DNA from: Selaginella moellendorffii | Lineage: Eukaryota > Plantae > Lycopodiophyta | Assembly (NCBI RefSeq): GCF_000143415.4 | Contig: NW_003314381.1 | Span: 1 to 64,000 of the forward strand | DNA: 64,000 nucleotides | Direction of reading: 5' to 3' | Shown here: piece after piece, positions 784 through 60,073 of the stretch | Layout of the letters: the number at the start of each line of letters is the position of its first letter | Position numbering within the stretch: the first letter of the stretch is position 1 | Translations under genes and position numbers: made by a program | The notes under the pieces: generated by a model | What the model was told of the DNA's origin: nothing | Seen by the model: only the letters and a program-made list of their open reading frames with translations | Database searches by the model: none

Positions 784-3700
784 CTAAGGAATAGGTAAAG
801 GTTGCAAAAGACCCCCCGGCTTCTCCCGTGGCACCTTAACCCGCTGACAAAGCTCGCATGATTTACAATACTTGAGGATATCAGCCTTTATATTCCTCCA
901 ATAAAAGTTGCGCTTAATCAACTCATACGTCTTCTTCCCCCCAAAATGACCGGCCTCTGGACGATCATGATAGTGGAATAAAACTTGAGTAATTAACGCA
1001 TCCACCTGTGGTAAATAGACACGGCCATTGTAGTAGAGAATCCCATCCACCAATGAGAAAGGAGCTTCCATCTGGTCTCGCAAAGAGGCCACCTCAGCAT
1101 CCTGAGCCTGAGCATGCTCAACCAATTGCCCAAACTCGCTGACCACCTTACTCAAATGATGACAAAATCGTGTTCGTAACGTCGTCACATGACGAACACG
1201 AGATAAAGCATCCGCCACCACATTTGTTTTTCCCAGACGATGCTCAATAGAAAACTCCCCAAACTCCATGAGTTTGACCATCCAACGAGCTTGCCTAGTG
1301 TTCAACTCCTTCTGTGTGAAAAGATACACAAGTGGTTTGTGATTTGTCAACACCACGAACACTGCACCATAAAGATAGTGCCGCCACGTCCGCAAAGCAT
1401 GAACAATAGAGAGTAACTCTTGCTCATATGTGGAATAGCGTTGCTCCGCAGAATTCAAAGTTCGACTCTCATATGCAATAGGCTGTCCCTCTTGCATGAG
1501 AACTCCTCCCAGTGCATAACCACTCGCATCGCATGTCACCTCGTAAGGTTTCGATGGATCAGCAATGCGAAGCACTGGAGCCTCGATCAACAATCGTTTC
1601 AGCGCCACAAAACTCTCCTCTTGTGGCATCTTCCACTCGAATGGCACATTCTTGCGTAACAACCGCATCAACGGAATAGCCACCTCTGCAAACTTATGCT
1701 GGAAACGTCGGTAGTAACTAGCCATACCAAGAAAACTGCACAACTCGGCCACTTTAGTCGGTGTAAGCCAGTTTTCCACCACAGCCACCTTCCTTGGATC
1801 TGTCTTGACACCCTTAGATGTCACAATATGGCCTAGATATTCCACCTCCGACTTTGCAAATTCACATTTGCTCTTCTTCGCATAAAGTTTGCTGTCTCGA
1901 AGTAACGAAAGAACCTTGTGCAAATGCACCCTATGCTCCTCCATATTCTTGCTAAAAACAAGAATATCATCCAAGAAAATCTCCACAAACTCATGAAGAT
2001 AACGCCCAAATACCTCCGTCATCAACCGAGTAAATGTGGCCGGTGCATTCGTCAAACCAAACGGCATAACGGTAAACTCAAAATGTCCAAAGCTTGTGTT
2101 GAATGCCGTCTTGGAGATAGATGCATCATCCATTGCAATCTGATGATATCCACTCCTCAGATCAATCTTGGTAAACACTCGTGCTTCACCAAGCTTGTCT
2201 AGGATATCATCCACACGTGGCATCGGCATCTTGTCCTTCACTGTCTTCTTGTTTAAAGCACGATAGTCAATACACATCCGCATTGAACCGTCCTTCTTCT
2301 TCACAAGCAAGACCGGAGCACCAAACGGAGACTTACTTGGCTGAATAAATCCAAACTCAAGTAACTCCTTGACTTGTCGTTGAACTTTTTGCTCCTCCGC
2401 ATAACTTAACCGAAATGGACGCCGGTAAATTGGCCGCGTCCCCGGCTCCAATGTAATCCCATGCTCCACACCTCGTAATGGAGGCAATCCATGAGGAATT
2501 TCAGATGGAAAAACATCAGAAAACTCATCAAGTACATCCCGTACTGCTGCTTCTCCCCCACACGTGCCTTGGTCCCCCAAGTCACGAACAAACAGCAAGT
2601 AACTTGAAAGTGCTTTTCCATTACGACAAGCCCGCTTCAAAGATGTAGCAGAGAGCATAACAACTGGTGGTTGAACGCCCTCGCCAAACCACACATCTTT
2701 AACGCCACCATACTCCAGCGAGATACGCTTAATGCTCCACTTTATCTCTGGATCCACCTTCACCAACCATGGCATCCCAAGAATGAGATCCACACGATGG
2801 ATATCCGCGAGATAAAAAGTCTCCACAAGTGTGGTTTTGCCAACCAACACTTCCAGCCCCTCGACACAAGCATTGAAATGCTGAGCAAAGGTAGCTGCAC
2901 CTTCCACTGTGTATGGAACAACTCCACGTGTGTTCAGGCAATGCTCCGCAACAAACTTTGCCAAAACAAAGTTGTCATCACTCCCACTATCCAGTAAAAT
3001 CCGCACTGGATCGCCACGGAACACGCCCTCCAGCATTAAAGCTGATTCACGCGTATCCTCGAGCTCCATCTTGTTCCACACACAGTTGAGTTGACGAGCA
3101 ACGATCGAAAGTCTCTTCCTCCTACCGGAATGGTCGTTCTCGTCATCCTCACGCTGTAAAGCTTGCAACTTTTTAGTATCTGACTTACCGTGAGAAGATG
3201 ATTGGCCATTCTTCTTGTCCTGCTGCTTGTTCTTCAACTGTGGACAATCAGCCTTGTAGTGTCCAAGTTCACCGCAATGATGACAACCCTGCCTATAATT
3301 CTTCACAAAGAACTTTTGCTTCTTGGACCCCTTTGCATCTGAAGTAGTCACCACCGACTTCAACTTGTGATGCTTGTTCCCCTCCTTGTGTCCACGGCGA
3401 TCATCACGACGATTCTCGACAGAAGGACTCCGCGAACGCTTGCGAGACTTGTGCTTGTCATTGTCAAGGCGACGAGCCGTATCAAAGAGCTCCTCCAAAC
3501 TCTTTGTAGGCTGAGAATGACGCAAGTGTTGCCGCATGCTCTCACTATGTAGGCCATCAATGAAGTAGGATTTGTTCTGATCTGGATCCTTCATTGGAAC
3601 ACGACTAATCAAGCGAGTAAGCTTCTCAATATAATCCCCGAGCGTCATTTTCCCTTGCTGGAAATGGCGAAGTTCTGTACGAGCATTCTCCACGTCGTAA

Positions 3701-4200
3701 TGAGGGGCAAAACGTAAACGAAAAGCAGCCTCAAACTCATCCATGGTAGACACTAGTGGTTTCTTATCCGCAACACGGGACTCCTCAAGCCAATTCCACC
3801 ATCGAAGACCCGCATCACGCAAAACCATTGGAATAGCCACTAAAGCCTCTGCATCTGGAGTTCCTCTAGCAGCCAAAAACTTCTTCACATTGGCTAGCCA
3901 AGCAAGACACTCGTCCACACCACCATCACCGGAAAAGGTTGGAATCTTGAGTCGATCTACCAAAGAAGGCTTACTTGGAGCGCTACCCCGTCCAGCCTCG
4001 AGTGCCTCAACACGCCCATGCATGGTATCCATCATGCCATGCATCTCGTCTTGCATCTCTTGCTGATTTTTATTAAGGGCTCGCAGCTCATGAACCACAT
4101 CTTGAATGGTCCAAATCTCCGCAGCTTCGTCGGCACCATCGTCGGCACCACCATCGACAATAGGATTCCAGCGTTCAGCTTGGTCGGCCATCGCAACCAA
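784..4200 (-). CDS. Gag-PR-RT-RNaseH-integrase N-terminal polyprotein
   Basis: Zinc knuckle CHHCGELGHYKADC, protease LLDSGS, RT CIDYRALN and FLDDIL, RNase H CDASG, integrase HHCC; first ATG about 4191; premature stop at 784 with the frame continuing into the integrase core. Confidence 0.93.
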   Translation of the reverse strand: MVAMADQAERWNPIVDGGADDGADEAAEIWTIQDVVHELRALNKNQQEMQDEMHGMMDTMHGRVEALEAGRGSAPSKPSLVDRLKIPTFSGDGGVDECLAWLANVKKFLAARGTPDAEALVAIPMVLRDAGLRWWNWLEESRVADKKPLVSTMDEFEAAFRLRFAPHYDVENARTELRHFQQGKMTLGDYIEKLTRLISRVPMKDPDQNKSYFIDGLHSESMRQHLRHSQPTKSLEELFDTARRLDNDKHKSRKRSRSPSVENRRDDRRGHKEGNKHHKLKSVVTTSDAKGSKKQKFFVKNYRQGCHHCGELGHYKADCPQLKNKQQDKKNGQSSSHGKSDTKKLQALQREDDENDHSGRRKRLSIVARQLNCVWNKMELEDTRESALMLEGVFRGDPVRILLDSGSDDNFVLAKFVAEHCLNTRGVVPYTVEGAATFAQHFNACVEGLEVLVGKTTLVETFYLADIHRVDLILGMPWLVKVDPEIKWSIKRISLEYGGVKDVWFGEGVQPPVVMLSATSLKRACRNGKALSSYLLFVRDLGDQGTCGGEAAVRDVLDEFSDVFPSEIPHGLPPLRGVEHGITLEPGTRPIYRRPFRLSYAEEQKVQRQVKELLEFGFIQPSKSPFGAPVLLVKKKDGSMRMCIDYRALNKKTVKDKMPMPRVDDILDKLGEARVFTKIDLRSGYHQIAMDDASISKTAFNTSFGHFEFTVMPFGLTNAPATFTRLMTEVFGRYLHEFVEIFLDDILVFSKNMEEHRVHLHKVLSLLRDSKLYAKKSKCEFAKSEVEYLGHIVTSKGVKTDPRKVAVVENWLTPTKVAELCSFLGMASYYRRFQHKFAEVAIPLMRLLRKNVPFEWKMPQEESFVALKRLLIEAPVLRIADPSKPYEVTCDASGYALGGVLMQEGQPIAYESRTLNSAEQRYSTYEQELLSIVHALRTWRHYLYGAVFVVLTNHKPLVYLFTQKELNTRQARWMVKLMEFGEFSIEHRLGKTNVVADALSRVRHVTTLRTRFCHHLSKVVSEFGQLVEHAQAQDAEVASLRDQMEAPFSLVDGILYYNGRVYLPQVDALITQVLFHYHDRPEAGHFGGKKTYELIKRNFYWRNIKADILKYCKSCELCQRVKVPREKPGGLLQPLPIP

Positions 4201-7331: not shown

Positions 7332-8108
7332 GATGATAAGGAAAAACTTCTTAATATTATTAAAATTATGAATTATTTAAAATACCTATTTAATAAAACT
7401 TTTACCTCTAAAACCTTAACAAAATATTCTTTTATGTACTAGAATATTTTAAGTCACCCTTGACTCCCCATTGACTTGGGTGGATCTCAGATGTGAATGG
7501 CAGGGAAGTCACTTATCTAAGGCTGTACACAAGATGCTGGATCTTCATCAAATGTATGCATTCCTTTTACAATCTTCAGGCTATTAATTTTGCAAGGCAA
7601 CTTCAATATGGCAACATATTGTGGCAATAGGTTTGGACTTGACCAAACCTAACCCCACCCAAATGCATGTGGTAGTGAATAGGAGAGTGGAAGTGATTGT
7701 GGTGGTATGCTCTCAAGGTGAAGCACATCACTCCCAGCCACAATTTATGGAGACAAGGAGCTCAATGCCCTAATCATCACCTGACCCAATCATCACTTGA
7801 GGAGGCAAGTCGCACATCAACAAGACACCCAAAAAGGATTGAAAGAAGTGAAGAACATGAAGACTCTTTCTCTAAGTTAAGTTGTCATTAATAGCAGTGA
7901 TGTTTTCAACAAGGTCATGGTCTTTATCCTCTCTAAGCTTTACAAGATCTTCAAGAAAATGTTGCATATCCACAACATGCCTCCCCCAATGGAGGCATTG
8001 AAGGATTTGCCTACCTATGATTTTCTCCACTAAGAGAAAAAGGTGGCTATGGAGGATTTGAAGAAAGTTGGCTGCTAGAAAAAGTTGTTCCTGTTTGTGA
8101 CATTGTAT

Positions 8109-8132
8109 AAGCTCTATTTCGTTAAAGTGGGA
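8109..8132 (+). repeat. Left terminal inverted repeat (24 bp)
   Basis: Exact reverse complement of 21466-21489; preceded by TSD GTAT. Confidence 0.92.
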
Positions 8133-8767
8133 TTTATTCAGTAAAATGGGACTAGGTACAAATTTTCAAGTATTTGAAAATAACGTGAAATTATATGTTT
8201 TTGTCCAGGGGCTAGACATATCTGGGGCATGGTGACTAGCGCGGTGACTTTGTGTCTAGACTGAGTCCATCTGGTTGTATAATAAATCTCATTGTCAAGG
8301 TGAACAAGCCAAATCTGAAGCTAAAGAAGAGCGATGGCATGCGCGCACACACTATTTGTTTGTTCATTGAGCGTGTGGTGAGCTTTCCAAGATGAATGTC
8401 ATTCCTATTAGCCAGACATATAACTTAATGGTGAGAACATTTAGATATTATTCAATGTTATCTTTTTCTAACGAATCTAATTGTGAAGGTGTAGCAAGAG
8501 GCATTGCTAGTCTGGAGAAGTCATTTAACTCATTTGACCCTTAGTGTATTTTCATGAAACTAAATAACATTCATATTATTAAGGAATTTCTCTAGTACCT
8601 TTTTTTTACGACATAGAGGCTTGCATTTCTTTCAAAGGTGATTTAGTAAAAGGCCTGAGGGCACATGCCATTCTATTTTTCAGACCGGTATTAAGATATA
8701 CTAGTGCAAAGGGAAAAAGGTATTTGGTGATCAAGTAAATGGCATGAGGGCACACGCCATTATAAGC

Positions 8768-9025
8768 CTAAGCGCTAGTGGACACCTCCTTTTTGGTACT
8801 CTCAGCGGTACTATCATCCTTCTCCGGGTCAGTTATTTTGCTTTGGATTGTTGTCTCTGACGTTACTAGGGCGTTCTCAATAGTTGTTAATGTTGCCGTT
8901 TGTTCAAAAAAATGATCACCTGGAGTATAGTACGGGGAGTTTGGAAGACTTATATATTCTACATCTTCACCTATCTCCTTCTCCGTCTCCTTTTCTGCCT
9001 CACTTACAGATTTTGTGCTTGCCAT
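8768..9025 (-). CDS. Small acidic, S/T-rich hypothetical ORF inside the transposon
   Basis: Open ATG-started 85-aa frame (MASTKSVSEAEKE...) in otherwise AT-rich DNA; no recognisable motif. Confidence 0.25.
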   Translation of the reverse strand: MASTKSVSEAEKETEKEIGEDVEYISLPNSPYYTPGDHFFEQTATLTTIENALVTSETTIQSKITDPEKDDSTAESTKKEVSTSA

Positions 9026-9665
9026 GAGAACGCTCTTCACCCTAAAATATGGAGTTCGTTGTGTTATAAAAGGAAACCAACACACACGCTGCAAGGGAAT
9101 GATGGTACATAAAGCACGTAAGCCCACAATATGGGTTTATGTGCCATTAATATGGGCCACACGCCATATTATTAGATTTATGCACGTGTGATTGGTAAAT
9201 GCATATGTCACATCATCTTTGTTTTACCTCACACACTATATCAGGCCTAATGAACCATATCACATGTGCGCACATGCTATATATATGGAGAAGTATTATG
9301 CAAGGATAGAAAAATTCAATGCATGATTGTGGAGAGCAATGGCATGAAGCCACATGCTAAATAACATTTTAGAGAAAGAATTAAAATAGAAACATGCAAA
9401 CAGTACTAAGTGGACCAAGACTTAGAAGTGCACAATTGAATGAGGTATTTCTAATAAATATTTCACTCACCTCATATAGGAATGGCTACCACTCTCAAAT
9501 GGCGTATCGCCTCATGCCATCACCTCACAATTTGTTATAACAATCCGATGAATTCATATTCGGCTTGTTCACCTTGAACTTTAAGTAAGATTTGCTAGAA
9601 CAACTAAGAATTTATACTTGTTATTTGTATCATCTCACCTAGGAATGGCGTAAGGCCATATGCCA

Positions 9666-12600
9666 TCACGCCTCCTCTGATTCAGATTTGGATTGTTCAC
9701 CTTGAAATAAAATACATTAGAAACTTAGTAAAGGAATATTAATGAATCTCACCTTGAACCCAGGTTATGAATGCTCTTGCTGCATCTCTTACATGGTCTG
9801 GCAAGGTGATGGTGGCACTCTGCTTCCACATCCAACCATGCACAACATTATCCACCGATATGCTCATGCTGGGATCCCTTGGATTCAGCACCCATCTCTT
9901 TTCTAGGCAATCCTTCGTATATCTGGAACATGGCTTGAACCACTCCACAGTTACATTGAAGGAGTTAGTTTCCGCGTCCTCCTCTGCATCAGTGATGCAG
10001 CGCCCCACCCATATCATTTGTTTTTTATTACTGGGTCTGACAAGCACGACCATTCCTTTGCAGACCTATACTGGATTGAATGCTGAATCCGGCTTCTTGT
10101 TCCTCGGCCCACAATAGTGATCCTAAACATCGTTATCTGTCACTGCATTTCCAGAGGACATTGTTCCGCTACTATCTGGTGCTCTGGGTTCTGGCCAAAA
10201 GGACTCTTCCAATTCTTCATATACAACCGGCCCATTTTGGATAGCAGATATAATCTTCTCCCAGTATTCGAGCAAAGGCTTGCACCTTTTAAAATAGGAT
10301 TCTCCACCAAACACCAACCCCCTCTTCCAGAAGGCAATATGCTGTCTAATCCCAGCCACTATACTTTCCTGGTCTTTGATTCCATCCGGGTGCATTGGCC
10401 GTGGGGAACCCTGAGGAATCATAGGTTCCCCAGTTATGGGATCTCTCTTGAAGAGTTCAATGCTGTCCATTGGCAGCCACACTGTGTCCCATTCTCTCAT
10501 CTTGTACCTCATCACTGGAGCACCGTCACGCATGCTAAAATGAAACTGAAGAGGCTTGGAGTGGCCAATCAGCGTTTCGGATCCGTCCCTGATGTAGCCT
10601 TTTACAAACCCCTTAAAGTCTGGAACCTCTGTCACAAGTGCAGCTTCAACAGTGCCTTTGATGCAATTTTGGAATTCATCGTAGAGTTGTGGGAGGGTGA
10701 GGACATTGGATCGCCGGAGGGACTCTGCCAGGTGACTGAACATGGCATCGACGTCTTCATGAGTGTGCCCAACCATGAGAAAGCCAAGTGTAACCGTTTC
10801 AAATATGCCTTTGGCAACAAGCATCGCCAAGTACGCGAAGACGTACATGTTTTTGTTCTCATTGCCAGCATTGTCTGTTTGGAGCAGAAGATGGGGTGGA
10901 AGGCCACATCGGCTGCAAGAACTTCCTTGAGATTCTGCTTCGTTTGGATGAGGTTGTGCATTCACCGGGCGACCAGCCTCGTCGGAATGGCATGAGGCCT
11001 CACGTGATAACCCTACAATCTGACGGCCAACATATTCACTGAGATGGCATGGGGCCCCACGCGATACTGCAAGCCTTTGCTCCTCCTCCAGCTGAACCCT
11101 GTATAGGGTTTGATCGACAAGGGCCTTATGCAAGGGTTGGCTGTTCAGCTCAGTCTGCGCACTTTGCAGAGACCTTAAGTGTTTTGCTAGGGACGCAATC
11201 ATCATGTTTGCACCCCCGCCACCCCATAGAGGTACAAAGAAGTTCCCATAGTTCTGGGCACCATGCCCATGAGCGATTATGCCAAACAGAGACACAGGCA
11301 GCTGCATGGATGAAGAGATTGCCTTGGGGGCAGGATTGAGTCGAGGTAAGCACGTCTTTTTCTGGTCCATTTTGTCGTGGATGATGCAGAGGTAAGAGTC
11401 AGGTCTCTCCATGGAGAGAATCCTGTTATGATAATATGCAGTCCTGCAGCTTCTTTGCTCGATGTTGTGGTCGAGCCACCTTCTAACCAACGTCTCTCGC
11501 TCTTGAGCGCTGCAAGAATTCTTCGACAAAGCCATTTTGATAGCAGTGCACTCGTCACACTTTGAAAAGCTGGAGTACTTTCCTATACTCACATCCCTGA
11601 ACCTGTTGCTCCACAATCTACTAAATCTAGATTGACTCAGCTTCCTGTAGCCATTACTCTGGAGTTCCCGATTCACATCTTCCAATATGGCCCCCTTGGT
11701 ATACATGGAAGGGAGAACTCGTTGGGTGTCTCGTGTTCCATCTTCCAAGAGGCGGGTTTTATGTGGTTGCTACTCGCTACATGTCTTGACAAACCTCTTG
11801 AAGATTGCCTCTCCATATACAACATGACCCCTGGTTTTGTGCGTACCGTCGTTCCCATGGACTGCCTGTTGAACCCTTTGTTCCTCGAACTCAGTTTTGA
11901 TTCTGTAGAATGTGGTTCGAGGGACTCCATAAATGATTCTCCATGCCTTCATGCAGACCAAACCCCTCTGGAAGACCATGCCCCCCACTTAATGTTCTGA
12001 AGCATCAACAGATGACCGTAATGCCTCATACACAAAATTGCGAGCTGCCTTCCAGGACAATGTCTTGTATCTTGCTCTCTCCTTTTCAATAGCATTCCAA
12101 TCAGCATGTTGACAGCACCTCCTCTTGCAACAAGCAACTATCGAGACCATTCGAACCTCCATCGCCATTTTCTGCCTTTTCGGTTCGTTGCTCAAATCCC
12201 TTTGGCTGCGCTTTAGGAAGGTGTACTTTCTTTTCCCATGAAGAGATGTTTTGTTATCAGTTGTAGTGGTGTTTGATTGTGAATCCTTCACATTCTCAAA
12301 CACTAAATGCCTCAATTTCCACTGCATAATGCTTCTAATAGTCAGACTGTTTTCTTCTGTGTCAACAACCTCTAAAATCGCAACTCCAATATCATCCCAG
12401 CCCAATTCTTGATTAGCAACCGCATCTCTTGGATCGACAACTGTGGCTAAGCCCTCAGCTACCACCTCCCCCTCGGGGTTGTTTAGAAACACCTTTGCCT
12501 GAATCCATGTAGCATGGTTCTTAAGATCCACGGAGGGAACATGTGTCGCACTTGCGCTGTCCCCAACATCTGCTTTCTTCTGAAGATTTTTCAAGGCAAC

Positions 12601-12807
12601 AACAACATTTACCCCGACGACCATCTCTCCTCGTTCAATAGCGACCACATTCCCATCGAAGACAGTCTCTACTGATACAGCAGCATTGCCTTCCCCAAGC
12701 CTTTGACAGTGTATAACAAAGTTTCGATCCATAGACACAAGGGTCCCTTTTGCAACTCTCTTCCCACCATTCAAAATGTAAACTTTTTCCCCAACCCTGA
12801 AGGCCAT
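9666..12807 (-). pseudogene. Sola-like (DUF7869-type) DDD transposase of about 1030 aa with four in-frame stops
   Basis: ORFs 11989-12807, 11770-11988, 10123-11748 and 9739-10053 share one frame (stops at 11989, 11770, 10123, 10066). Motifs: CCKRRCC, VCMKAWRIIYGV (HTH-like), KCDEC, and IIHDKMD / LQTDNAGNENKN / GHTHEDVD (candidate D-D-D triad). Probable short last exon GEQSKSESEEA*. Confidence 0.8.
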
Positions 12808-13053
12808 TTTGAAAGTGCAGAAAAGAAGTTAAGACCATACAAAAAATGATTGGAGAATGGCCTAAATCATAACATACCAAACAACCTCAATAGCATGAGG
12901 CCACATGCCATTATTCAAACATGCTATTGACACCCACGTGAAATTTCGCATTCACAAAATTGGCATGAGGCCTCATGCCATCTTGATAAGCACACAGCTG
13001 CAGGCAAGTAAAAACATACATGACAATACCTTAGCCATGAAATTGCAAGGGCG

Positions 13054-13147
13054 CAAGATGGCATGTGGCCTCATGCCATTCCTAAATGTGGTCCTAGGCC
13101 CAAGATGGCATGTGGCCTCATGCCATTTCTAAATGTGGTCCTAAGCC
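13054..13147. repeat. 47-bp tandem duplication, each unit containing the palindrome
   Basis: caagatggcatgtggcctcatgccattYctaaatgtggtcctaRgcc, two copies. Confidence 0.9.
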
Positions 13148-13220
13148 ATTCCATGGTGAACATACCAGGAAGCACAAGTGCCGAATATCAAGAGGAAGCG
13201 GTAGCCACACCAAAGACAGT

Positions 13221-13345
13221 GCCGCTCGCAACACCGCAACTACTCGTAGCGCCGCTCGCAACACCACAACTGCTCGTAGCGCCGCTCGCACAAACTGCCA
13301 CTCGCATAAACTGCCGCTCGCAATGGTGCTCGCAATGCCGCAACC
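13221..13345. repeat. CpG-rich 30-bp tandem repeat upstream of the transposase
   Basis: gccgctcgcaacaccRcaactRctcgtagc twice, plus partial gccgctcgca units. Confidence 0.8.
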
Positions 13346-14149
13346 GCTTGTAGACGCATAAACCACAGCTCACAACGTCGCTTACACAAGCAGCGCTCAT
13401 TGCGCTCAGCGGAACCAAGAACACGGCGCACAAAAATGATAGACCTAGGAATGAGTTCGAGAATTCAAAAATAACACACGCTTGAACGTCACATCAAATC
13501 CTCTGACAAACCAGATCTTATGATTCCTCTGACAAATTTCAAACTGAGTAGCTTCTAGACTTTGCTGTCGGAGGTTGAACTTTGTCACATGATGTCCTTG
13601 CCTCGATCCAGCTGTGCCATGTTAGTGATTCTAACTTTGCCATGCCGTGTCAGTGATCCGCGCCAAGATTATTCGCCGTGTAAAGGAATAATTATGCTGT
13701 GTGTGTACGTCCATTTATGGCAATATAAGGCCACACGCCATTCAAAGAATAATACTAGTCGAGCATTTTTTGGTGCATTTTTGGGTTCAAAATTGCATGA
13801 GCCCACACGCTATAAAGTTTACCTGTACCAAAAATAGAAACAGCTTTATTTACTTGGGAATTTAAGTGGTTGAGGCATTTTTAAACTTACAAACACATGC
13901 CCTACTTACATTCCTTTGGTTGCTTAAAATTCAAAAATATTATAAACCTTTCTTTTTGCATTTTCAATGTTTTCAATTATGGTTTTTGATTTTCGCAGGA
14001 CCAGCCTAGTAATCTATTTGCATCCTGTCATGTTTATAGCTAGCTTTCGTTTGTCCCCTTCGCTAGCCTGAGATACATTTGCTCGGCATCTGCCTCTTAC
14101 AGCATTTGCCCAGAAAGGGCATCTTTCTTCATGCAGCATTTGCCACATG

Positions 14150-14175
14150 TTTAGGGTTTAGGGTTTAGGGTTTAG
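14150..14175 (+). repeat. Interstitial plant telomere repeat (TTTAGGG)3.7
   Basis: tttagggtttagggtttagggtttag. Confidence 0.9.
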
Positions 14176-15633
14176 CAATTCAGTAGCTTGATAAACACGC
14201 AAATACAGAACTTGATGCAAAATCCTTTGATATGTCACAATGCCCCTAGGACCATAAACACATTTCAATAGAGAGGGTCCTTTCATTTCATAACTCCTTA
14301 TGTAGATCTTGGTGAAACCAGAGTTAGTGAAGTTAGTTTCTTGTGATCCCGCATCTGATTGTGATATCCCTTTGCAGTGTCGATGGAAAGGTCAATGCAC
14401 ACCAAACTGTAAAATCTTGGAGCAAAATAACGGTCGGATCTATGGCAAATGCCCCTGAAACATTGTAAGGCTCGTGTGGTCTCATGTGGTGTCCGATTGA
14501 GATGCTTCTTTGCAGGGTCATCAAGAAATACATTGTATACCATTCTGTAAAATCTAGTTGCAATCTAATGGTTGGATCTCTAGAAAACTCAAAAAAATCT
14601 CGCGCATGTCAGAATATTCTAGGAAAATACTCCTATGTGCCCCTGAAAATGGCATGCGGCCCCACGCCATTCAAGAGATAACGCCAGATGACGCCGAGCA
14701 TTTTTTGGTGCATTTTTTGGGATTTGTATACCATTCTTTATTTAGCTGAACATCTGGCATTTTTGGAAATACAAGATGCTTTGGAATATCCAATCATGCA
14801 TGGTATAAATATAGCGAGGGTATTAAATGATATCCCAATCATGATCTTTCTTTTGGATTTCGCGTGCATGCAGTCCGAGGAATGATGACGTTGCGGATTT
14901 CTTTTGGATTTCATGTGCATGCATGCGTGCGGCGATCCAAAAATTAATGGTGGCGCCCAAGTCCGAGGAATGATGACGTGGCGGGATTACCAACCGTCGT
15001 GACATTTCGCGCGTGTGAGGTTAGGTTTTGCATTTTGCTTCGTACTCGCGCTCGCACACTCGCGCTCGCATCGCGCTCCCACTCACGATCACGCTCACAT
15101 TCGCGCTCATCTACCTTCTCTACAGGTTTCTCGTGTGCATCGGTGTCCACTCGCGCTTGCATCACACTTGCGCTCGCATCGCGCTCGTGTGCATCGGCGT
15201 CCACTTCAAGACACACCCAGTTTGTAACTTTGCCGCCAACTCTGCCGCCCACTCCGCCACCCACACGCAGCCCACTTGGCGTCTCGGGAGATTTCAGCGC
15301 CACTCTCCAACTGTAAGTGGCAGAGTAGCCTTGCTGCTAAGATCCGCTGCACACACAGTGCACATTCGCTAGCAAGTCCGGCCTCGATTGTCACGCCTCC
15401 ATTCGGCTTCAAATGGTAAGTCTTTTAGGCCAAGTAGAAAATGGCATGAGGCCACATGCCATTCAGTAGCAACATTGGCATGCACCGATTGGGCTCTCGA
15501 GTGCAGTCCGGTTACAGATGGCGTGTAGCCTCACGCCATCTTAGGATGCAGCCTCAAGACATCTGATGCAGTGGTGAATGGCGTGTGGCCTCACGTTATT
15601 TCCAGCTGCTAGCTTTTCATCTGTCAGCTCTAA

Positions 15634-18600
15634 TTGTTGTGCATTTCTGAACAGGTGAGGAATTGCATTCTTCTTCCAGCCACTGTCAATGTGGATGCAG
15701 AGAAGGGGGAGGAGCTCACCAGTTGGACTTTCGGGATGGAAGGCGAGGATCTGAGGCTGTACAACACAGATGGTGGGAGAAAAGATTGCATGGGGATCCT
15801 CATCCAAGTGACAGACACTCCATGCAGTTCCATGCAAGAATATGGACTGGCACTTGTGGTAGAGACAGCGTCTGCCTTCAAGATCCACCTTGCACATCCT
15901 AGCGGCTTCCCGGAGGGGGGCAGCGGCTATGAGGAATTCCTAGAGGGAGCTAGAGAGAGGTTGTCCAGGAGGCCCACAATTTCAAAGACGATGCGGGTCT
16001 ATGAAGATCACATGGAATCCACGGACCTCACCTACGGCGATGTTCAAAAACTATATTCCAACATTGAGCCGTTGAGAGTGCCTCCAGTTCGCGAAGTGAA
16101 GGGGAAGGGGGTCAATTTGGAAACTACCCCGAAGCAGAAAAGGGTGGTCAAGCTCAAGCCGACGTCCGACTCTCCTGCTCCAAAAAAGAAGCTACTCGGT
16201 GATGCCATTGCCTCGGGTTCGAACACTACACCCACAAAAAAGAAGAGCCGCAAAGAGTAGAAAGAGCAAGAAGAGGCAGCAAAAATCGTCGCAGATAATA
16301 GTACTTGTTACTATTCCAACAAAGTATATACAATCGACGTGAGCCGTATCGACATCCAAAGCAAATACAACCACAGGCTAGTATCTAATGAGTGGGTGGA
16401 GAAACTGAAGCAGAAGATGCTGGCAAGTCCAGTAACACCCGACATCGCAGACGTGATCCCCTACTACCGAACAATGAAGGGCGAGACGAGGTTTCCAGAC
16501 TTGATCAATAGGAAGGTGTTGGACGATCAGAACATCCGGTTCTATGCCGTCTCTGGGCAGCATTCTAGCTTGGCAATGCAAGAGATAGTTGTGGATATTA
16601 TGGTGGGCGAGGAGGTGAAGAAAGTCTTCAAGACAAGAGTTGTCCGCCTGATAAAAGGCAACTCGCCCCTCTGATCTATCATATACATCTCCCACGCGCA
16701 GAATGTCAAGCAAGAAACGTGCTACAAATCAGGTCTGCACGAGACATTGGCACGAACACGAAAGCTCTAGGTTCAACTGAAGAAGCCACAAAAACTAGGA
16801 CAAGGACGTGCACTAGCAACTAGCGCCTGGCATGTAAGCCTCGTTGCATGTGGCATAGCATGTGGCCTCACGCCATTTCCATTGCAGGAATTCTCGAGTC
16901 GTCTCTCGAAAACACTGGGGGTCAATGACACACTCAGCATCCATAACATTCTACTCGCGACAAAAGTTATTTTTGACAAATGGGTAGATGTGCTGAGGAG
17001 GTACCATGATGGGGAGTTACTAAACTCAATGGGTGTGGAGGACGGCCGGAAGCCCAATGATTTGAAGCTCAATGCCTTGCGTTTCTCGCGGTCTCTAGAC
17101 GACGACGACCTTCTGACAGTGGCTAATGCTCTTCTACGTGGTGAGGTAGTCTTCAACAAGACCAAAATGACTCCCGGCCATATTGTGACATACGAGGACT
17201 TGTGCACGACTCTAAGAGCTCGTGTGCTATTGAAGGATTGGATCTTCGAGCAAGTGGCCATGGAGAGGGTGAGCATCGACACCACGCAAGAGATGATGGA
17301 AGCGCTGGATTTGTCAAATGAAGACATCGACGAGTACGTGAAGGGGGCCCCCAAGTTCATCGATCTGCTGCGGGATGCCACGAAAAGTAAAGCTGAGAAG
17401 TTGGATCAGTATCCAAATTTCATTAAGAGGGATGTCGACCGCCGGCTTCAGAAACAGCTCGACCCCGCAGTAGAAGCCTATCGAGAACCTGACCGAGTAT
17501 ACGTGAATTCGGATGAGGATCAAAGGTGGAGGAGCATCATTTCCCGCGGAGATGAGTAGGTCAAGAACATCTTTTGTGTGATGAACTTCACAAACGAGGA
17601 GATCACTCATGCAGACAAAGTCAGCTCCATCATTGACTTAATGGTGGGACTTGCGGAGGTGGAATCTTCAGTCCACTATATGATCTACGACTCCAAATCC
17701 TATCACAAGTTCTGGAAGGCCTTGAACGAGGTGAAGGCTCGGTTGAAAGGCAAGGAGATGCGGGAGATCCATGGGATAATGGCTAAGAAAAAGATACCGA
17801 CGAATGTCTGCATCTTCACACTCGCCCTTGTTATTGGTCCTGCAGCAGAGTGGGACTGGAGTGACTTCCCAGCTTCGTTCGACAAGGCCGATCGAATTGA
17901 TCTGAGGGACGTCAATTTACCCGTGCCTGAGGAACTGAAGACGGCTATGGAGCTTTCGAATCCAAAGAAAGCTCCAGGTGCAGCATGGGAAATGCTCAGC
18001 TGGGTCTTCAACGCAATAGCGGGTGGGTCACCTGCTTCCGACTCCAAGGGCAAATGCATTGTCGAGTACAACTGCGGCGGACTATTCTTTCGAGCCGCAC
18101 TACTCAAGGGTGTCCCGTGTGTTGCGGTGACAAACTCCATTGAAGAGGTGACTTCAATGGAGCATATAATTACAGTTGCCAAAGAAAAACAGTATCTTCT
18201 CTGCGAACTTGGTGAGTACGCACTTTAAGTTTAAATGTTATCTCACAAGCTCTGTATGCAGGAGCGTGGCCACCCCCAGATGCTGAAACGGCGTTAACAG
18301 CTACTGTTGAAGATACCCATGTTGGGCTGAGCTCACAACCTGCACAAGGTAAGGTCACGTGAGGCCTCACGCCATTTTCATTATAGATCGTTGTGAATAT
18401 TCAAACACGAGGACTGAAAAGCGCACTAGTGGCGCGTCGAAGAAGGACAAACAGACAAGCAATAGGAAAAAAAGAGGTACAAATTATATTTGCAATGGCA
18501 TGTGGTCTCATGCCATTCCTTGCAGGAGACACTTCTTCAAAGGCAAAATAGGCAAGCACCAGCCAAGCTCAAACTAACAGTGGTCATAAAAAGCGAAAGC

Positions 18601-21047
18601 ACGTTGGACAGTCGTCGGGATCAGAGGCGTTTGATTCGAAAAGGAAGAAGGGCAATGAAAAGATGATAGGTAATGCCTCGCGGTTATGGCGTGTGTGCTC
18701 ATGCCATTCATTGCAGATCAAGGGCTGAGTGAAAGCAGCCAGTCACCACCTCCTGACTCAGATTCCTATAGCGGACTCCCCTTCCCCAATCTCAATGGAG
18801 AGGTACAATGGATGAGGGATGCTTTTCAAGTTAGGGCCATGTTTTTCTCATCTCGTCGTCTTCGAAGGGTGCAAGAACATGCAGAAACCATGTTAAGATA
18901 GTCGGGTGAGGATACAGTCGTAGGTCACATACTAAAACAGGCTATGGATGTCTTGTATTTTGAGATGGAGACTTGGCTAGATGATTTTCCCAAGATGGTC
19001 CTGGAAGAACAAGCCATCCAGCCTGAGCAGCCTATGGAACAAATGTAGGAGGGGGATGAGGAGCCAGAGAAAGATAATGAGCAGGAAGAGCAGAAGGACG
19101 AAGAGGAGGACAAAGAAGAGGAGGACGAAGAGGAGGACAAAGAAGAGGACGACGAAGAGGACTTGGATGGTCCTCACAATGGTGACGATCACAATAACGA
19201 TGACGACGATGATGACGACGATGGCCAGCCTGAGGTGGCCAAAGAGCAGCAGAGGAAGGTCATACAAGACAAACCATCAGGTAAATAATAGTACATCCAT
19301 TCCTAACCTTTTACCATTTCTAACATTGTCCATGTAGGTCGCAGAGCAAATGGTAAGTAGAGATTATTCAGTTGAATTTATAAACTCTAGCCTTTAGTGT
19401 CGAGGAAGGATAGTGCCAAGCAAGGGTCGAAACGTATGTCCAATCCTTCAGAATCAGCAGTGCGCCCAAGTGATATCAGTCCTAGTTCCTCAATAGCAGT
19501 TGATGGTAAATACAGTATAGTCGATTCAATGTGATAATGAGTTTGTTTTTAGTAGCACGGGAGGATACCATCTCAATCAAAGGGAGATATTTGGACATGC
19601 ATATGGATCCGCCAGTGGACTCTACTTGCCTGCAAGAGTCATCAGAGCTGGTGGAGGCTACTATCCATATCAACGCCAAGCAAGCTGACCACACTCCACT
19701 TGATGCTGCCCATACCACTGAGTCAATCTTGTCCACGTATCCAACTGACGGTGACCAGGTGCCATTGGACCCGCATGAGGCCGCCCCAGCCGCCAAGCCG
19801 GTCGTATCCTCATTTCCAACGGACTCAACGTGTGCCCAATAGTCTGACTACGTGCCGTTGGAACCTCCCTACACCGCCCCTGCTGCCTGTTCGGTCATGT
19901 CCACTTTGCCAACGGAGGCACCAGCTGAAATGGCGTGTGATCACACGCCATCAGAACCACCCCATGCCACTGTTGAGCCAGTTGTACCAAAGTCTACAGC
20001 TGAAATGGCATGTGCCCACACGCCATCGGATGCGATTGACCCCACATTGCAGAGGAGAGTATTTCTGCCCTTCACGTTTCCTCGACCAAAACCCTCTCAA
20101 CGACCATCGGGAGCACCATTCGCTAATATTGTAGATGGTAAAATTGACTTGTACCATTTTTTATGCTGACGCATTTCATTTCAGAGTCACGGCGAAGGTA
20201 CTGTATCGTTTTTGATCTGAACGGTGTCCTTTTCTCCCATGAGCGTGGCTTGTCCTCGAATGTCACTGCACCCTCCAAAGCCTACGGTCGCAAGTTGGTC
20301 AAAAGAGACAGATTCACATTAATCACACGGGAGAAACTGCGGGATCTAATAATGACCATGCGACACTTAAAACAGAGGGCCAGGTTCAATTTGCAATTGG
20401 GAGTTTGGACATCCATGATGCGCCACAATGCATTAACATTGCTACAGATGATGCACGATCAGACGCGAGTAATATTACCATTTGACTTTCTCCTAACGCA
20501 GGAGGATTGCTTGACTATGGTCCATGTGAGGGGTAGCAAGCCCATCTTCGTCAAGCCAGAGGCTGTAGTGATGAACTGGACTGCTAGGTTAAGTGAAATC
20601 CTCATCATCGATGACTCGCCGATTAAAACTGTAGCGAACACGCACACATATGCAGTGCACCCCATCTCTTGCAATATGGAAACTAGGGAGAAGAAACCAT
20701 ATGTTCTGGGGGACCTTGCAAAACGGCTTGGAGCGATGGTGATAGAGAATCGGCCAGTCCAGGAGGTGGCTGCAGAAATCAACCAAATGGCAGATAGAAT
20801 GGTATATCAGAAGCTATTTGATCGGACAGACACCAGTCATCATTTATGGCATGTATATTGTCTAGCCAAGCACTATCCGCATCTCCATAATCTGCTCAAC
20901 CGGATGGGTTCTTCGACCACTGAACATGAGCATGGACGTATTAGAGAAGAGATGGCATTACTATTGGGTTTAAATCCTGATAGTGTGGAGAGTGATGAAA
21001 TTCCAAGATTATTGTATAGGCATTGGAGGCAAAAAATAACAGTCTGA
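15634..21047 (+). pseudogene. Multi-exon transposon cargo gene: ParB/Srx-like domain, degenerate DNA MTase-like fold, acidic tract, FCP1/NIF-like HAD phosphatase
   Basis: ORFs 15634, 16339, 16882 and 17578 are in one frame, broken by single stops (16258, 16672, 16768, 17557). Short GT-AG introns (16834-16887, 18212-18261, 18349-18386, 18477-18525, 18670-18716, 19281-19337, 20138-20184) appear to link it to the HAD exon. Start codon not resolved. Confidence 0.62.
20185..21047 (+). CDS. FCP1-homology (NIF family) HAD phosphatase-like domain, terminal exon
   Basis: IVFDLNGVL (motif I), GVWTSMMRHN (II), TQEDC...FVKP (III), ILIIDDSPIK..AN (IV); open frame. Confidence 0.78.
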
Positions 21048-21465
21048 GATGGCATGTATTTATTTAAAAATGTAACTTATTATGGCATGGGGTTCCATGC
21101 CATTGTATTAATATTAAAAGACAATTCTTTGAGAGGATTTGCATTATACTAGAAGTGTTACAGCATGTTATTGGAAGTCTACGAAGTTGTTTTATTAATA
21201 AGGGGAAAGTAAAGATTGAATGGGGACTTGGGCTCCACCTAGACTCGGAGCAATTGAGCTAATATTAAAAGGATGGAAAGAAATTGGACGACGATGACAA
21301 GGAGAAGAGAGAGGTGAAGCAGTGGCAGGGGGAGGAGAAGTGATTGAGTAGACATTTCCTTGTTTAAAATAAAATGGCATGTGCCTCAATGTAGTTGAAT
21401 TTTGTTATATTTATATACTATATAAAGGTTTGGAAACCTTATTTTACAAGTGGGATAATGACAAT

Positions 21466-21489
21466 TCCCACTTTAACGAAATAGAGCTT
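21466..21489 (-). repeat. Right terminal inverted repeat (24 bp)
   Basis: TCCCACTTTAACGAAATAGAGCTT followed by TSD GTAT. Confidence 0.92.
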
Positions 21490-22929
21490 GTATGCTATAT
21501 GTGTTAAAACCAAATGATAGACAACAAAATGACCTCTTTCACCTTGAGCATTTAAGGCCTTTGATAATTTTTCTTGGAGAGTTTCTAGCTCTAGGAAAGG
21601 AAGTTTATGAAGGTATTATGACATCCACTTTAACAAGCATAGCATTCACCACTCTCATATATGGTCTGTACTTCAGCTTGATAGGCATCAATTATTGTGT
21701 GCTACTCTAAAACATGGCATGCCATGTCATGTAAGTTCATAGTCCTATTCAAAAATGTCTTCTATGATATTTATAATGCTGACAATAGAGCATCAAGATT
21801 CAATTTTCTAACATATATGATTATGGAATGAGATTTAAATATATTGTCACTATGAATCTTTGGAATTTTAGGAGATAAATAGAGATAAAATAGCCAATAA
21901 AGGCTCTCTTATTAAGTAATTACCATTAGCTTTTTTTTAAAAAGTGTGCCATATATGATATTAGAGTAAATGGCATGGGTTAAATTCTTTAGTGCTATTT
22001 AAAATATTCTATATAGTATATATTTTTACCCTTAAAATTGAAATTGAAAAGTCCTTGCAAAGGCTCTTTAGGTTAGTTGAAGTCATTCTTCTCTTTATGA
22101 ATAAAATGAACAATAATATCCTTAATACCCTAAACCAATTCAGCTAAAGGGCAATCCAATCTTGACTAGATCATGGCATTTTTCCCTTTTGCAGGAGAAG
22201 AACCAATAATAAACCTATTTCATCTCAAGAAAATTTTAAATATGTGAAGATTTTATAATATTCCTCCAAAATATTATATCAGAAGTTCATAAGACTTGAA
22301 CCTCTCTTATACAATCTTATACCATATTGGCTATTGTTGTAGGCAAATTCACTAATGAACTTTGGCTAATATAATAGAGTAGTATATCCTCCACCACCTA
22401 ATTATGTGCCTTCTATATGCCTTTCACTAATGTCGCTAATGTTAACCTGTATAATCCTGGTAGATATGGGGCTGGAAAGCTAGCCCAAATCACCTAGAAA
22501 ACTCATAAAGACTAGTGCTCTCATAGAAAACATCTCAGCCCTAAGTACAAACTATATATATATATATATATTGGAATTTACTAATCCCCATGTATATGGC
22601 ACTCTCTATTAGGAAAGTCATCTCAACATTGTGAACCAATATGTGTTCAAGGATAACTAGAAGACTAAAAGGACACTAGTAGGATAAGAAAAACAACATC
22701 TAAAGCAATCCATCAAAGGTAACTATTGAAACTTTGAAACAAATGCAAAAGCACAAACATAACTATGAGTTGAGAGTAAATTTATTCTCCAGCAACTTCA
22801 AGATCATTTAGAACTCTAAACTCAACACAGAAACTCAAAATGGATAAAATAACCATCATTTTGTGTCGCGAATGTGACTTTGAGTATCGAAAGATATTTG
22901 TCAGCCAGTCCTTACGGATACTCTTTCTA

Positions 22930-25367: not shown

Positions 25368-28300
25368 GCAACGGGCTTGGAGTTCAACTCCAAATTCAAA
25401 TGCGCTACATTTGTTATTAGAGGAATTGTCTTAGTGATTCCTATCCAACTTTTATCGGATTTTCTAACTCAAGTTGCATATGTAGAGACTTTTCTAGTAG
25501 ATTCGAAGTGACTTGTGTAGGATTAGTTGGATTGCACCATTTGGTAAGAACATTGTATATATGTTCAACTACTAATAGAAGCATGTATGTAGTTAGCAGG
25601 ATGGTGAAAAGGAAATGTACTGATGATGCTAAAACCTCTAGACGGGTAAATGGAGAGGAGGAAACTCCTGTTAGAGATGCTGTGGAAAAAGTTGAGGCTA
25701 AGTCAGAAGAGGAAAAGCCGGATGCTACAGTGCTACAGTGTACAGTTCAGGAAGTTAAGATTGAGAATTTGCGAAGGGAAGTTCGCAAATTGAAGAAGGA
25801 AAATAAAAAGAGGAAGAAAGAAGCTGAGGCTGCTAAACCAACTAAACCTAAACAATCGGACTCCTCTTCAAGTTCTGAGGACGATAAAGTTTTGCAACCA
25901 CCCCCGGTTGCATGAGTTTCAAAGTTCAAGCCCCCAAAACCACCCAATTTTAGAGGCGTGCGGGACTATCAGGTTTTGGAAAATTGGGTTTACGATATGG
26001 AAAACTATTTCATAGCGGCAAATGTAGATGATTGTACAAAAGTTGCATGCACGCAATCCTTTCTCACCGATCATACTAATACTTGGTGGCACCAGGTGTG
26101 TGCTGAAAAAAGGTAGACTAGAAGTTGGACCAAGATGTGGTCTTGTATCCATAAGGAATATTTGCTGGATGATCTTGGTCTGAGACTTTGCGTGAAGCTG
26201 CGGCAGTTAAAGCAGCGAGGGGACCTCATACATTACGTTAATGTGTTTGCTTAAAAGCGTATTATGATTGCAAATATGAGTGACGAAGATGCTCGGAGTT
26301 ATTTCCTAGAGGGCTTAAGTTCACTTTCTCGCAATAAGATTTTGAAGTTTAAGCTGAAGACGTACCTAGAGTGTAAGGAGGTAACACAACAAGTTGCCTT
26401 TAGCCATTCACTCATGGAACAATATCAGCAGCCATATGCTGGTACCTCGAACAAGAATAAGAATTCTAGGAATAAACAAGGTGATCGAAAATAGAGGGTG
26501 GAAGGTAGGTTTTGCCTTGGGGGCTCACAAGCAACAGTTAACAAAGGTTGTGGTAGTGGTTGGAAACCACCAGCAGTTTCTTCTAGTCCTAAGCCCTTTG
26601 TTCCTCCTCTTGATGGGTACAAGCAGCAACAACTTATGAAACTTGCTCCTAGCGGAATGGGTAGTGTGGGTCATTGCTTCCATTGTGGAGAGTCAGGACA
26701 TAGGTCCTTGGAATGTCCCAACAAGCATAAGATAAAGTCTCATGTTAATATCATGAGGGAAAACAGTGGTGGTGAAGTTGAAGGGGTTGATGAGTTGGTC
26801 AATGCAAACTATGAGGAAGAGGAGGTGAGTTACTTTGTTGCTTTCCTTAAGTTTTTCTCACAGTCAATGCAAACACTAATCCGTTGATATATCTGGTAGG
26901 CTTTATTTGTGGAAACCGAATCCGAGTGATAATTAACACGAGAGCTACACATAGCATGATATCTGAAGACTTAGTTAAGTTGTTAGGATTGAATGCTGAG
27001 CAGATGTCACCTATGCACTTCCGGTTTGCAGAAGGTGGGCAAGTAGTCAGAAAATTTTTAAGTGATGTTCCAATAAAAATATCCAAGTGGAAAGAAAGAG
27101 TGGACTTGATAGTGTTGAAGATACTAGATTTTCAAATGGTGTTTGGTATGGATTTCTTCAACAGATATATAAAAGGGATTTACGGTGCTGGACAAAGTTG
27201 CATCATATTGAAGTCAGAAGGACATCCCTATGTGTCCTTCCAGTTGCAAAAGTGTTCCTCAAAGAATTGGGATGCTAAGTTCCTGACTGTGAGAGTTGCT
27301 CAAAAAGCAACTAAAAAGGGATGTTGGACCTTTTAGGTTCAAGTGATGGAAACTGATGGTGTTGGTGACTCAGTTCGAATTGGTGATGGGGTTGATCCTG
27401 TACCAAAGAAGATATTGAAGAGTTGTTGGCAAGGAATCAGGATATCTTTCCAAAGGATTTGCCACCAGGGCTAACTCCTATCCATGAGGTTGATCATTAG
27501 ATTGAGGTCATTCTAGGTTCTACACCACCTAAAAAGGCTCTGTATCATCTGAACATCAAGGAGATGGAGCATTGGTCCTTTTTGTTATGAAAAAGGATGG
27601 AACCACGAGGATGTGTATTGACTATCAGGCACTCAATAAAATCAAGGTCAAAAACAATTATCCTTTGCCCCGCATTAATGACTTGTTTGACCAACTCTTA
27701 AAGGCTAAGTATTTTAGGCGGCTTAATTTGTAGTCCAGGTATCATCAGATACGGGTAGCAGATCAGGATGTGAAGAAGACAGCCTCTAAGACTCAATATG
27801 GATCTTAGGAGTTCTTTGTCATACCGTTTGGGTTATGCAATGCTTCGGCAATGTTCAACACTATGATGGATAGAATATTCGGAGATTATTTGGACACATT
27901 TGTTGTCCTATACATCGACAATGTTGTAGTCTTCAGCAAAATGTTGGAGGATCATTTGAAACACTTGGAGCTAGTGTTTCAAAAGTTGTGCGAACATAAA
28001 CTGTATGCTAAGGAAAGTAAATGTGCTTTTAGACAATTGCATTTAAAATTTCTCGAACATATAGTTGGTGGTGGCACAATTGAGGTAAATCCAAAGAAGG
28101 TGGAAGTGGTGAAGTCTTGGGAAGTTCCGACCACTATATTAAATGTTCGTTCCTTTCTCGGTTTAGTAGGATACTATTGCAAATTTGTCCTCAATTTTGC
28201 AAGAATTGCTCTTCTGTTGACTGAGTTGACAAAGAGTAGTATACTATTTCATTGGACACTAGCTTGTCAATGTACTTTTGTACAATTGAAGGAGATCTTG

Positions 28301-59970: not shown

Positions 59971-60073
59971 CTTTGATAATTCAAAAAAAAAAAGATACCC
60001 GTGAATATTCTCGGTGCTGAAGAGATTAGGGTTAGGGTTCTTGAGGGGATTGGAGACGGCAGAAAATCGATCG

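Follow-up and report, generated by a model that had tools for sequence, protein, structure and literature searches.

Can more than 13 kb of plant DNA with two large, broken genes be a single transposon, and if so, what is the second gene doing there? The question is raised by positions 8105-21493 of a 64-kb stretch of the Selaginella moellendorffii genome (contig NW_003314381.1, positions 1 to 64,000, forward strand; "the window" below means this whole stretch). The original prediction took this locus to be a Sola-like DNA transposon with a transposase gene and a cargo gene. Our results make it highly probable that 8105-21493 is one complete, inactivated copy of a multi-copy Sola-type (DUF7869, DDD-motif) cut-and-paste transposon family, and that this family has a second gene of its own.

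The ends of the element are clear. The 24-bp sequence AAGCTCTATTTCGTTAAAGTGGGA forms a perfect terminal inverted repeat (TIR), at 8109-8132 on the plus strand and at 21466-21489 on the minus strand, without a mismatch. The window has no further match even if three mismatches are allowed, and shuffled sequences lead us to expect none. Directly outside both TIRs lies the tetranucleotide GTAT (8105-8108 and 21490-21493). Because the TIRs are perfect and the flanks identical, 8105-21493 is a TIR element with a 4-bp target site duplication (TSD). Both the perfect TIRs and the GTAT duplication had been predicted. The element is laid out as follows, with the strand in brackets.

8105-8108: left TSD, GTAT; the same four bases lie outside both TIRs.
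8109-8132 (+): left 24-bp TIR, a perfect match to the right TIR; the same end occurs in another copy (L001, see below) at a different locus.
8133-9738 (-): non-coding subterminal region, 3' of the transposase stop; the alignment of homologues stops at 9739, and six palindromes with at most two mismatches lie here.
9739-12807 (-): transposase pseudogene, a single exon of 1,022 codons with a PF25273 core and four in-frame stops.
12808-15735: divergent spacer of 2.9 kb with nine palindromes and a short (TTTAGGG)n tract, from a motif scan and a tandem-repeat scan.
15736-21047 (+): second (cargo or accessory) gene of about 1,670 codons, a pseudogene here; its frames are joined by inferred introns.
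16261-16671 (+): stretch with an unconfirmed ParB/Srx-like reading (…YAVSGQHSSLA…), from embedding neighbours only.
17560-18211 (+): unconfirmed orphan stretch with a degenerate N6/N4 methyltransferase-like reading, from embedding neighbours only.
20199-20645 (+): domain like the NIF/FCP1 phosphatases of the haloacid dehalogenase (HAD) type, PF03031.
8335-21102: 24 dispersed 22-bp palindromes, from a motif scan of the window.
21466-21489 (-): right 24-bp TIR, a perfect match to the left TIR.
21490-21493: right TSD, GTAT, adjoining the right TIR.

The two genes stand head-to-head, as predicted, with a spacer that measures 2.9 kb from ATG to ATG instead of 2.6 kb. This spacer presumably holds both promoters and both 5' untranslated regions (UTRs). 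At 14149-14175 it contains 3.9 units of the plant telomere-type repeat TTTAGGG, possibly a telobox-like promoter motif. A search of the element against Rfam returned no match, and neither did a search for the TIR in metagenome contigs.

The transposase frame, on the minus strand, begins with the ATG at 12807 and ends with the stop at 9739; it is not open. Four stops interrupt it (11991, 11772, 10125 and 10068), the first two of which are glutamine codons in L001. A single minus-strand frame of about 1030 codons had been predicted; it exists and has a DUF7869 core, with 1,022 codons and the four stops. The central piece of 541 amino acids, which contains DNAGNENKN and GHTHEDVD, matches the Pfam family DUF7869 (PF25273) with an E-value of 1.3e-43 and 149 bits (gathering cut-off 26), so that the protein does align with DUF7869 as proposed. 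A database search yielded 75 homologues, nearly all of which carry PF25273. They include environmental eukaryote sequences with 38-44% identity to the transposase and annotated proteins of the bryophytes Ceratodon purpureus, Riccia sorocarpa and Calypogeia fissa with about 30% identity. Alignments of full-length relatives (935-947 amino acids) start in the N-terminal CCxxxCCQ region and reach the C-terminus of the frame in the window. Since they align along the whole frame, the transposase is a single exon, and the stops are mutations and not introns.

Three acidic motifs are invariant in an alignment of 20 relatives (28-46% identity): HDKMDxxKT (D125, D128), QxDNxxxxNKN (D292) and GHTHxDxD (D332, D334). 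The original prediction named DN..NKN and GH...D as known motifs of Sola transposases, and the last two are of this form. This layout is what would be expected of a DDD-type RNase H-like transposase, with the triad assigned by motif. The N-terminal region is a candidate DNA-binding region. As a separate observation, this part of the protein (11989-12807, minus strand) weakly matches TNP1/En/Spm (Transposase_23) at an E-value of 0.011, which is below the cut-off. It also holds two similar units of about 60 amino acids, and relatives carry PF26133 (DUF8039) there.

How well does the name Sola fit? A 4-bp TSD is a published hallmark of Sola1 and Sola2 (PMC3845634, PMC3627910). The TIR agrees with the published TIR of the insect element Sola1_NA in 12 of 24 bases without gaps, including the block AAAGTGG at positions 16-22. 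Compared by eye, the Sola2 transposases in the supplement of PMC3627910 show the same three types of motif (…DFKEN…, …W(S/C)D(G/N)AxHFK(S/N)… and …YHGKSxxDxHF…). Sola elements have already been annotated in ferns. "Sola-type" looks to us like the best classification, and the element may be Sola1-like rather than Sola2. The predicted Sola-like two-gene element thus holds up in its TIR- and TSD-bounded structure, its DUF7869 core, its three acidic motifs and its AAAGTGG block; the Sola1 target site, which we return to below, does not fit.

The locus is not the only copy. A Logan contig, L001, encodes a protein (P0001) that is 95% identical to the transposase, and it matches 12981-12799, 12556-10675 and 8241-8108 of the window at 97-98% identity. 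L001 is an internally deleted derivative at a different locus; it shares the TIR end, beyond which unrelated DNA follows (AAAG…). The expectation that other copies share the TIR is borne out by this end, in a copy that has lost part of its interior. For the second gene, we compared public sequencing runs over 15200-21199. Contigs from two of them (X4 and X20) are colinear with the window over this range, with about 1.7% divergence, variant bubbles and even depth, which means that the second gene is present in other copies too. The second large gene hence belongs to the family and not to this copy alone, and these sequences show a mobile family with multiple copies. Precisely at the palindromes at 15463 and 18376, two X4 contigs depart from the window and go on with what follows a different palindrome of the element (after 12910 on the plus strand or after 10988 on the minus strand). 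These switches are either assembly-graph switching at repeats or rearranged copies that recombined at palindromes.

The other copies also tell us what happened to this one. Among the 32 listed transitions, 28 have T or A in the window and C or G in the other copies, in CG or CHG context. Two stops of the second gene (TGA at 16672, which is CGA elsewhere, and TAG at 16768, which is TGG elsewhere) and two of the transposase are sense codons in other copies. Because C>T and G>A changes at CG and CHG sites dominate, this copy appears to have been silenced and then eroded by deamination of methylcytosines. Judging by its sequence, it is a methylation-decayed pseudogene pair and inactive. Raw RNA-seq runs of the same species (X23 and X24) contain essentially no reads on 15400-21199. 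In the spacer, about 160 X23 reads and about 100 X24 reads match the 40 nt of 15310-15349 only, with an A>C difference at 15340. Since these reads carry constant unrelated flanks, they come from a transcript that is expressed at another place in the genome and has 40 nt in common with the element.

The second gene is harder to read. Its coding frames extend over 5.3 kb of the plus strand, between an ATG at 15736 and a stop at 21047, with about 8-10 in-frame stops in this copy. The first 2.5 kb form one frame that is broken by TAG and TGA codons only. Further downstream, changes of frame and stops are largely resolved by short GT-AG introns. Our tentative model, with introns inferred from the frames, has 8 exons and about 1,670 codons. 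Its seven introns lie at 18212-18261, 18349-18386, 18477-18525, 18670-18716, 19281-19397, 19506-19552 and 20138-20184; it is this intron model that was scored. Joint removal of the mini-introns at 18349 and 18477 keeps the downstream frame and disposes of two stops, and removal of the three mini-introns that bear palindromes restores the frame. Hence a plus-strand gene opposite the transposase does exist, as predicted, with a length of 5.3 kb instead of about 5.4 kb and as a pseudogene in this copy.

The protein has basic stretches resembling nuclear localization signals, an acidic tract and a proline-rich repeat region. It is probably a nuclear protein of about 1,670 amino acids. Residues 13-161 of the last exon match PF03031 (NIF/FCP1) with an E-value of 4.8e-6 and 26.8 bits (gathering cut-off 21.8). 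This is the sole significant Pfam domain in the gene, so the description of the cargo as "multi-domain" is not supported. Motif I of the domain, DxDx(T/V), reads DLNGV, with asparagine at the second aspartate, so that this copy lacks the motif. In this copy, the AAC codon may have arisen from GAC by G>A decay. A search of the domain against the PDB returned no match at an E-value of 0.01, and the domain must therefore be called divergent. No piece of the gene has an OrfB_Zn_ribbon or TnpB match in Pfam.

A palindrome recurs along the whole length of the element. The full unit has 22 bp, ATGGCRTG-WGGCCW-CAYGCCAT. The core TGGCRTG-N6-CAYGCCA occurs 26 times in the window with at most two mismatches, against 0.6 expected, and 24 of these sites lie inside the element (8335-21102). 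Six are found in the 1.6 kb that separate the transposase stop from the left TIR (8335, 8651, 8740, 9340, 9500 and 9646; a further one at 9260 needs three mismatches). Two are located in frame in a variable linker of the transposase. The spacer holds nine (12891, 12961, 13059, 13106, 13793, 14650, 15442, 15519 and 15579), four of them immediately upstream of the transposase ATG and three immediately upstream of the second gene. That gene itself contains four in or at mini-introns, two in the proline-rich coding region and one in the 3' UTR. The R/Y positions vary independently between the two arms, and there are no compensatory pairs. Because the changes are one-sided, we take this variation to be decay of an ancestral CpG (GCGTG…CACGC). 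We also considered the palindromes as structured-RNA elements with covariation, a candidate that was ruled out by the same one-sided differences between the arms. In the left subterminal region, a unit of 25-46 nt (TCAAGGTGAACAAGCCAAATCTGAA…) abuts a palindrome three times (8295-8340, 9553-9577 and 9660-9705), once in inverted orientation, which suggests duplicated modules of unit plus palindrome.

Are palindrome arrays peculiar to this family? They are not. Each of three distant DUF7869 loci has its own repeated palindrome of 21-24 bp beside the transposase open reading frame (ORF). In C. purpureus (CM026423.1; L002) about nine copies of TTCAACTCGAYTCGAGTTGAA occupy positions 9183-9947, within the 800 bp upstream of the transposase. 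A metagenome contig from ENA (L003) has TTTAGCTCGAKTCGAGCTAAA five times upstream (1032-1863) and once just downstream (5039), and a second one (L004) has at least 13 copies of CCTATGGCTATGTGGCCATAGG between 34 and 4391. From these loci, palindrome arrays look like a trait of the transposase lineage, with a sequence that changes with the lineage. As far as we found, such lineage-wide arrays appear to be undescribed in the literature. A tblastn search with ten pieces of the second gene against L001 and the three distant loci gave no match in the available sequence. Since relatives without a detectable homologue of the second gene carry arrays of their own, the sites track the transposase and not the cargo. 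Most likely, the palindromes are double-strand binding sites for a dimeric element-encoded protein, and our first candidate for the reader is the N-terminal region of the transposase. It would be compatible with the arrays of the relatives that the second protein may also read the palindromes.

Another way to read the array is as one half of a ParB-parS-like pair. A ParB/Srx fold in the N-terminal part of the second protein would nucleate on the palindromes and coat or mark the element, and a dead methyltransferase-like domain and the phosphatase domain would act as effectors. The palindromes are indeed parS-like in form and confined to the element. Among its language-model neighbours, 16261-16671 has clusters of ParB_N, DUF6551 and DUF3723, and 17560-18225 has some of N6_N4_Mtase (0.87-0.90); both are leads only. 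By eye, the G-Q-H motif recalls the DGQHR signature of ParB-like domains. No significant match to a ParB, DndB or methyltransferase model or to a PDB chain stands behind these leads, however. For 16261-16671 there is no match in Pfam, NCBIfam, PHROG or PDB and no database homologue, and 17560-18211 has no match in the same four collections either. The translation of 17578-18228 has no homologue in a word-indexed protein search, and that of 17560-18225 has none among 1.84 billion representatives in an exhaustive HMMER search. When pieces of the second gene were compared with the PDB, the best result was a non-significant DndE match (E-value 0.26). As for an assignment to the N6/N4 methyltransferases (PF01555), the hidden Markov model does not match, a DPPY-type motif is missing, and what could be motif I (…EYNCGGLFF…) is degenerate at best. 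Single-sequence AlphaFold2 models have a predicted local distance difference test (pLDDT) score of 34 for the ParB-like piece and 37 for the methyltransferase-like piece, and they are unusable. Above all, relatives in which no second gene was detected still carry arrays, which makes the sites independent of the second protein. Given the arrays of the relatives, a transposase domain or some other shared factor is a better candidate for the binding than a ParB-parS pair, which we consider unlikely.

The same leads can be extended into a self-recognition system. Family-specific CpG palindromes would be seeded throughout the element, also in purpose-built mini-introns and coding linkers, and a protein of 1,670 amino acids, made up of a ParB/Srx-like reader, a dead methyltransferase scaffold and an effector like the phosphatases of the carboxy-terminal domain (CTD) of RNA polymerase II, would counteract or redirect host silencing. 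Such a system would be VANC-like in effect and of independent origin. We regard this extended version, too, as improbable.

Does the second gene matter to the transposon at all? It could be a passenger, a host gene or chimera that was captured once by transduplication, as in Pack-MULE or CACTA captures, and that has no role for the element. NIF is a common host domain, none of the three distant relatives shows such a gene, and Sola2 elements are known to swap 3' cargo regions (PMC3627910). Nevertheless, a passenger is distinctly unlikely for the following reasons. First, two pieces of the gene have no host-like homologue, and one of them was searched against the 1.84 billion representatives. 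Second, the NIF domain is too divergent for a recent capture. Third, a frame of about 1,670 codons has been kept with its splice sites, apart from C>T decay. Fourth, the gene occurs at even depth in other copies. Fifth, it is studded with the family's own palindrome, also inside its introns. We therefore read the second gene as an accessory gene of the transposon family and not as recently captured host cargo.

The palindromes inside introns invite a further question, namely whether the array acts mainly at the level of RNA. The palindromes could belong to a mobile, introner-like module that unites a palindrome with a 3' splice site and gave rise to the mini-introns or marks them, or they could supply small-RNA pathways as hairpins. 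Each palindrome can fold as a hairpin, four of those in the second gene are followed within 8-12 nt by a pyrimidine tract and CAG or TAG, and three sit in GT-AG introns of 38-49 nt that the frame requires. But introns hold a minority of the copies; most occupy the subterminal region, the spacer, in-frame coding linkers of both genes and the 3' UTR, and the variation between arms is independent CpG decay and not compensatory. Moreover, the arrays of the relatives lie upstream of the transposase ORF, and X23 and X24 have essentially no reads on the second gene. Hence we think it very unlikely that the palindromes work mainly through RNA or introns, and we keep to sites bound as double-stranded DNA.

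That the boundaries are an artefact, with two unrelated genes lying by chance between fortuitous inverted repeats, is scarcely conceivable: just one complete copy was inspected directly, but a 24/24 inverted match faces none expected, the 4-bp flanks are identical, L001 joins the same terminus to different flanking DNA, and the palindromes stop at the ends of the element.

Several points nevertheless weigh against a complete Sola-type element with a family-specific, palindrome-associated second gene. The complete structure was seen directly in one copy. The name Sola relies on TSD length, DDD-type motifs, a by-eye likeness to Sola2 motifs and a 7-base TIR block. The target reported for Sola1 is AWWT/AWDT (Bao et al. 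2009, in the form in which PMC3845634 cites it), and neither GTAT in the window nor the AAAG flank of L001 fits it, which is a comparison of two sites only. About 85% of the length of the second gene is without assignable function, and the X20 contigs, should they be RNA, retain two of the inferred introns. The contigs of the relatives are short or cover +/-10 kb only, so a diverged second gene could be missed. Finally, the binding of the palindromes is a prediction from sequence.

Taken together, we propose the following for intact members of the family. By analogy with related elements, a transposase of about 1,020 amino acids would cut out the element after recognising its 24-bp TIRs, and reinsertion would duplicate 4 bp. 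The divergently transcribed, family-specific second gene would make a protein of about 1,670 amino acids with a C-terminal NIF/FCP1-type phosphatase domain. The roughly 24 CpG-containing palindromes in the subterminal region, spacer, UTRs, short introns and coding linkers would be bound by a dimeric element-encoded protein. The copy in the window has been silenced and eroded through deamination of its methylated cytosines.

The surroundings of the element contain other repeats and host genes. A Ty3/Gypsy element at 784-4200 (minus strand) has a frame of 1,138 amino acids for gag, protease, reverse transcriptase (RT), RNase H and integrase, and Ty3/Gypsy fragments at 27851-28531 and 45939-46607 (both plus strand) encode RT/RNase H and an integrase zinc-binding domain. 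Two intronless host genes follow on the minus strand. The first, at 50293-52911, encodes a G-type lectin S-receptor-like kinase of 872 amino acids (B_lectin, PAN and kinase domains), and the second, at 58558-60141, a pentatricopeptide repeat (PPR) protein of 527 amino acids. Together the two genes mark the host as a land plant.

Few eukaryotic cut-and-paste transposons have been studied as little as Sola elements, and we know of no Sola transposase that has been characterised biochemically. The family described here offers defined ends, a conserved transposase with candidate catalytic residues and a palindromic candidate binding site that changes between lineages. These three features make recognition between protein and DNA and their co-evolution directly testable. 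The second gene encodes a large orphan protein that is kept by a transposon family and whose sole recognisable part resembles the CTD phosphatases of RNA polymerase II. Should this protein turn out to influence transcription or silencing in the host, plants would have a new case of counter-defence encoded by a transposon. In practice, annotation ought to mask the 11-14-kb units as a single repeat family, together with their pseudogenes and palindromes, instead of calling genes in them. The main value of the locus lies in the lineage-wide palindrome arrays and in the orphan accessory protein with its phosphatase tail, both of which can be tested.

How does the element compare with known systems? 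Fungal Starships are giant elements that mobilise cargo and have accessory DUF3723 genes. The label "cargo-carrying" and the DUF3723 clusters among the neighbours of 16261-16671 (a lead only) recall them. Starships, however, span 20-700 kb, use a tyrosine recombinase and carry many genes that benefit the host, whereas our element has 13.4 kb, a DDD-type transposase and one extra gene. En/Spm (CACTA) elements have subterminal motif copies, often as inverted pairs, near their ends and promoter, which are bound by the element-encoded TnpA. Multiple copies of a short motif are common to both, as is, weakly, the TNP1/En/Spm match in the N-terminus of the transposase (E-value 0.011, below cut-off). 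In contrast to En/Spm, the sites are spread here through the whole 13 kb, including introns and coding linkers, and the catalytic core is DUF7869 and not that of CACTA. VANDAL elements, which are Mutator-like elements of Arabidopsis, reportedly encode the anti-silencing protein VANC (Fu et al. 2013; Hosaka et al. 2017). They too have an accessory protein besides the transposase, and short family-specific motifs across their non-coding parts that differ between related families. Superfamily, protein and motif type (tandem there, palindromic here) are different, and the likeness to VANC is an analogy only, in a copy decayed by methylation.

Sola1 elements and their miniature inverted-repeat derivatives are closer. 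They share the 4-bp TSD and AAAGTGG at TIR positions 16-22; they differ in that the insect elements encode about 630 amino acids in a single gene. Closest of all in layout are the Sola2-Fanzor elements DFa-1/2/3 of Dictyostelium fasciculatum and PPa-1/4/5 of Polysphondylium pallidum (Bao & Jurka 2013, PMC3627910, supplementary table 1). Their length is 10.2-15.3 kb, their TIRs have 12-22 bp and their TSDs 4 bp, and like our element they combine a Sola-type transposase (about 890 amino acids there) with a second, multi-exon gene (1,010-1,827 amino acids there) at low to moderate copy number (PMC3627910). The motifs of the transposases also take a common form (D..., D-[GN]-A-x-x-x-K-[SN] and H-x-x-x-x-D-x-x-F). 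Their second gene is Fanzor1 (TnpB-like), whereas ours encodes an orphan protein that ends in a NIF phosphatase domain. Their hosts are Amoebozoa and not land plants, and no palindrome array is reported for them. Since Sola2 elements of 10-15 kb with a second gene have already been published (PMC3627910), a giant two-gene Sola element is not a new category, and the original view of an element unlike ordinary ones is not supported. What sets this element apart is its land-plant host, the identity of its second gene and the palindromes that run through all of it.

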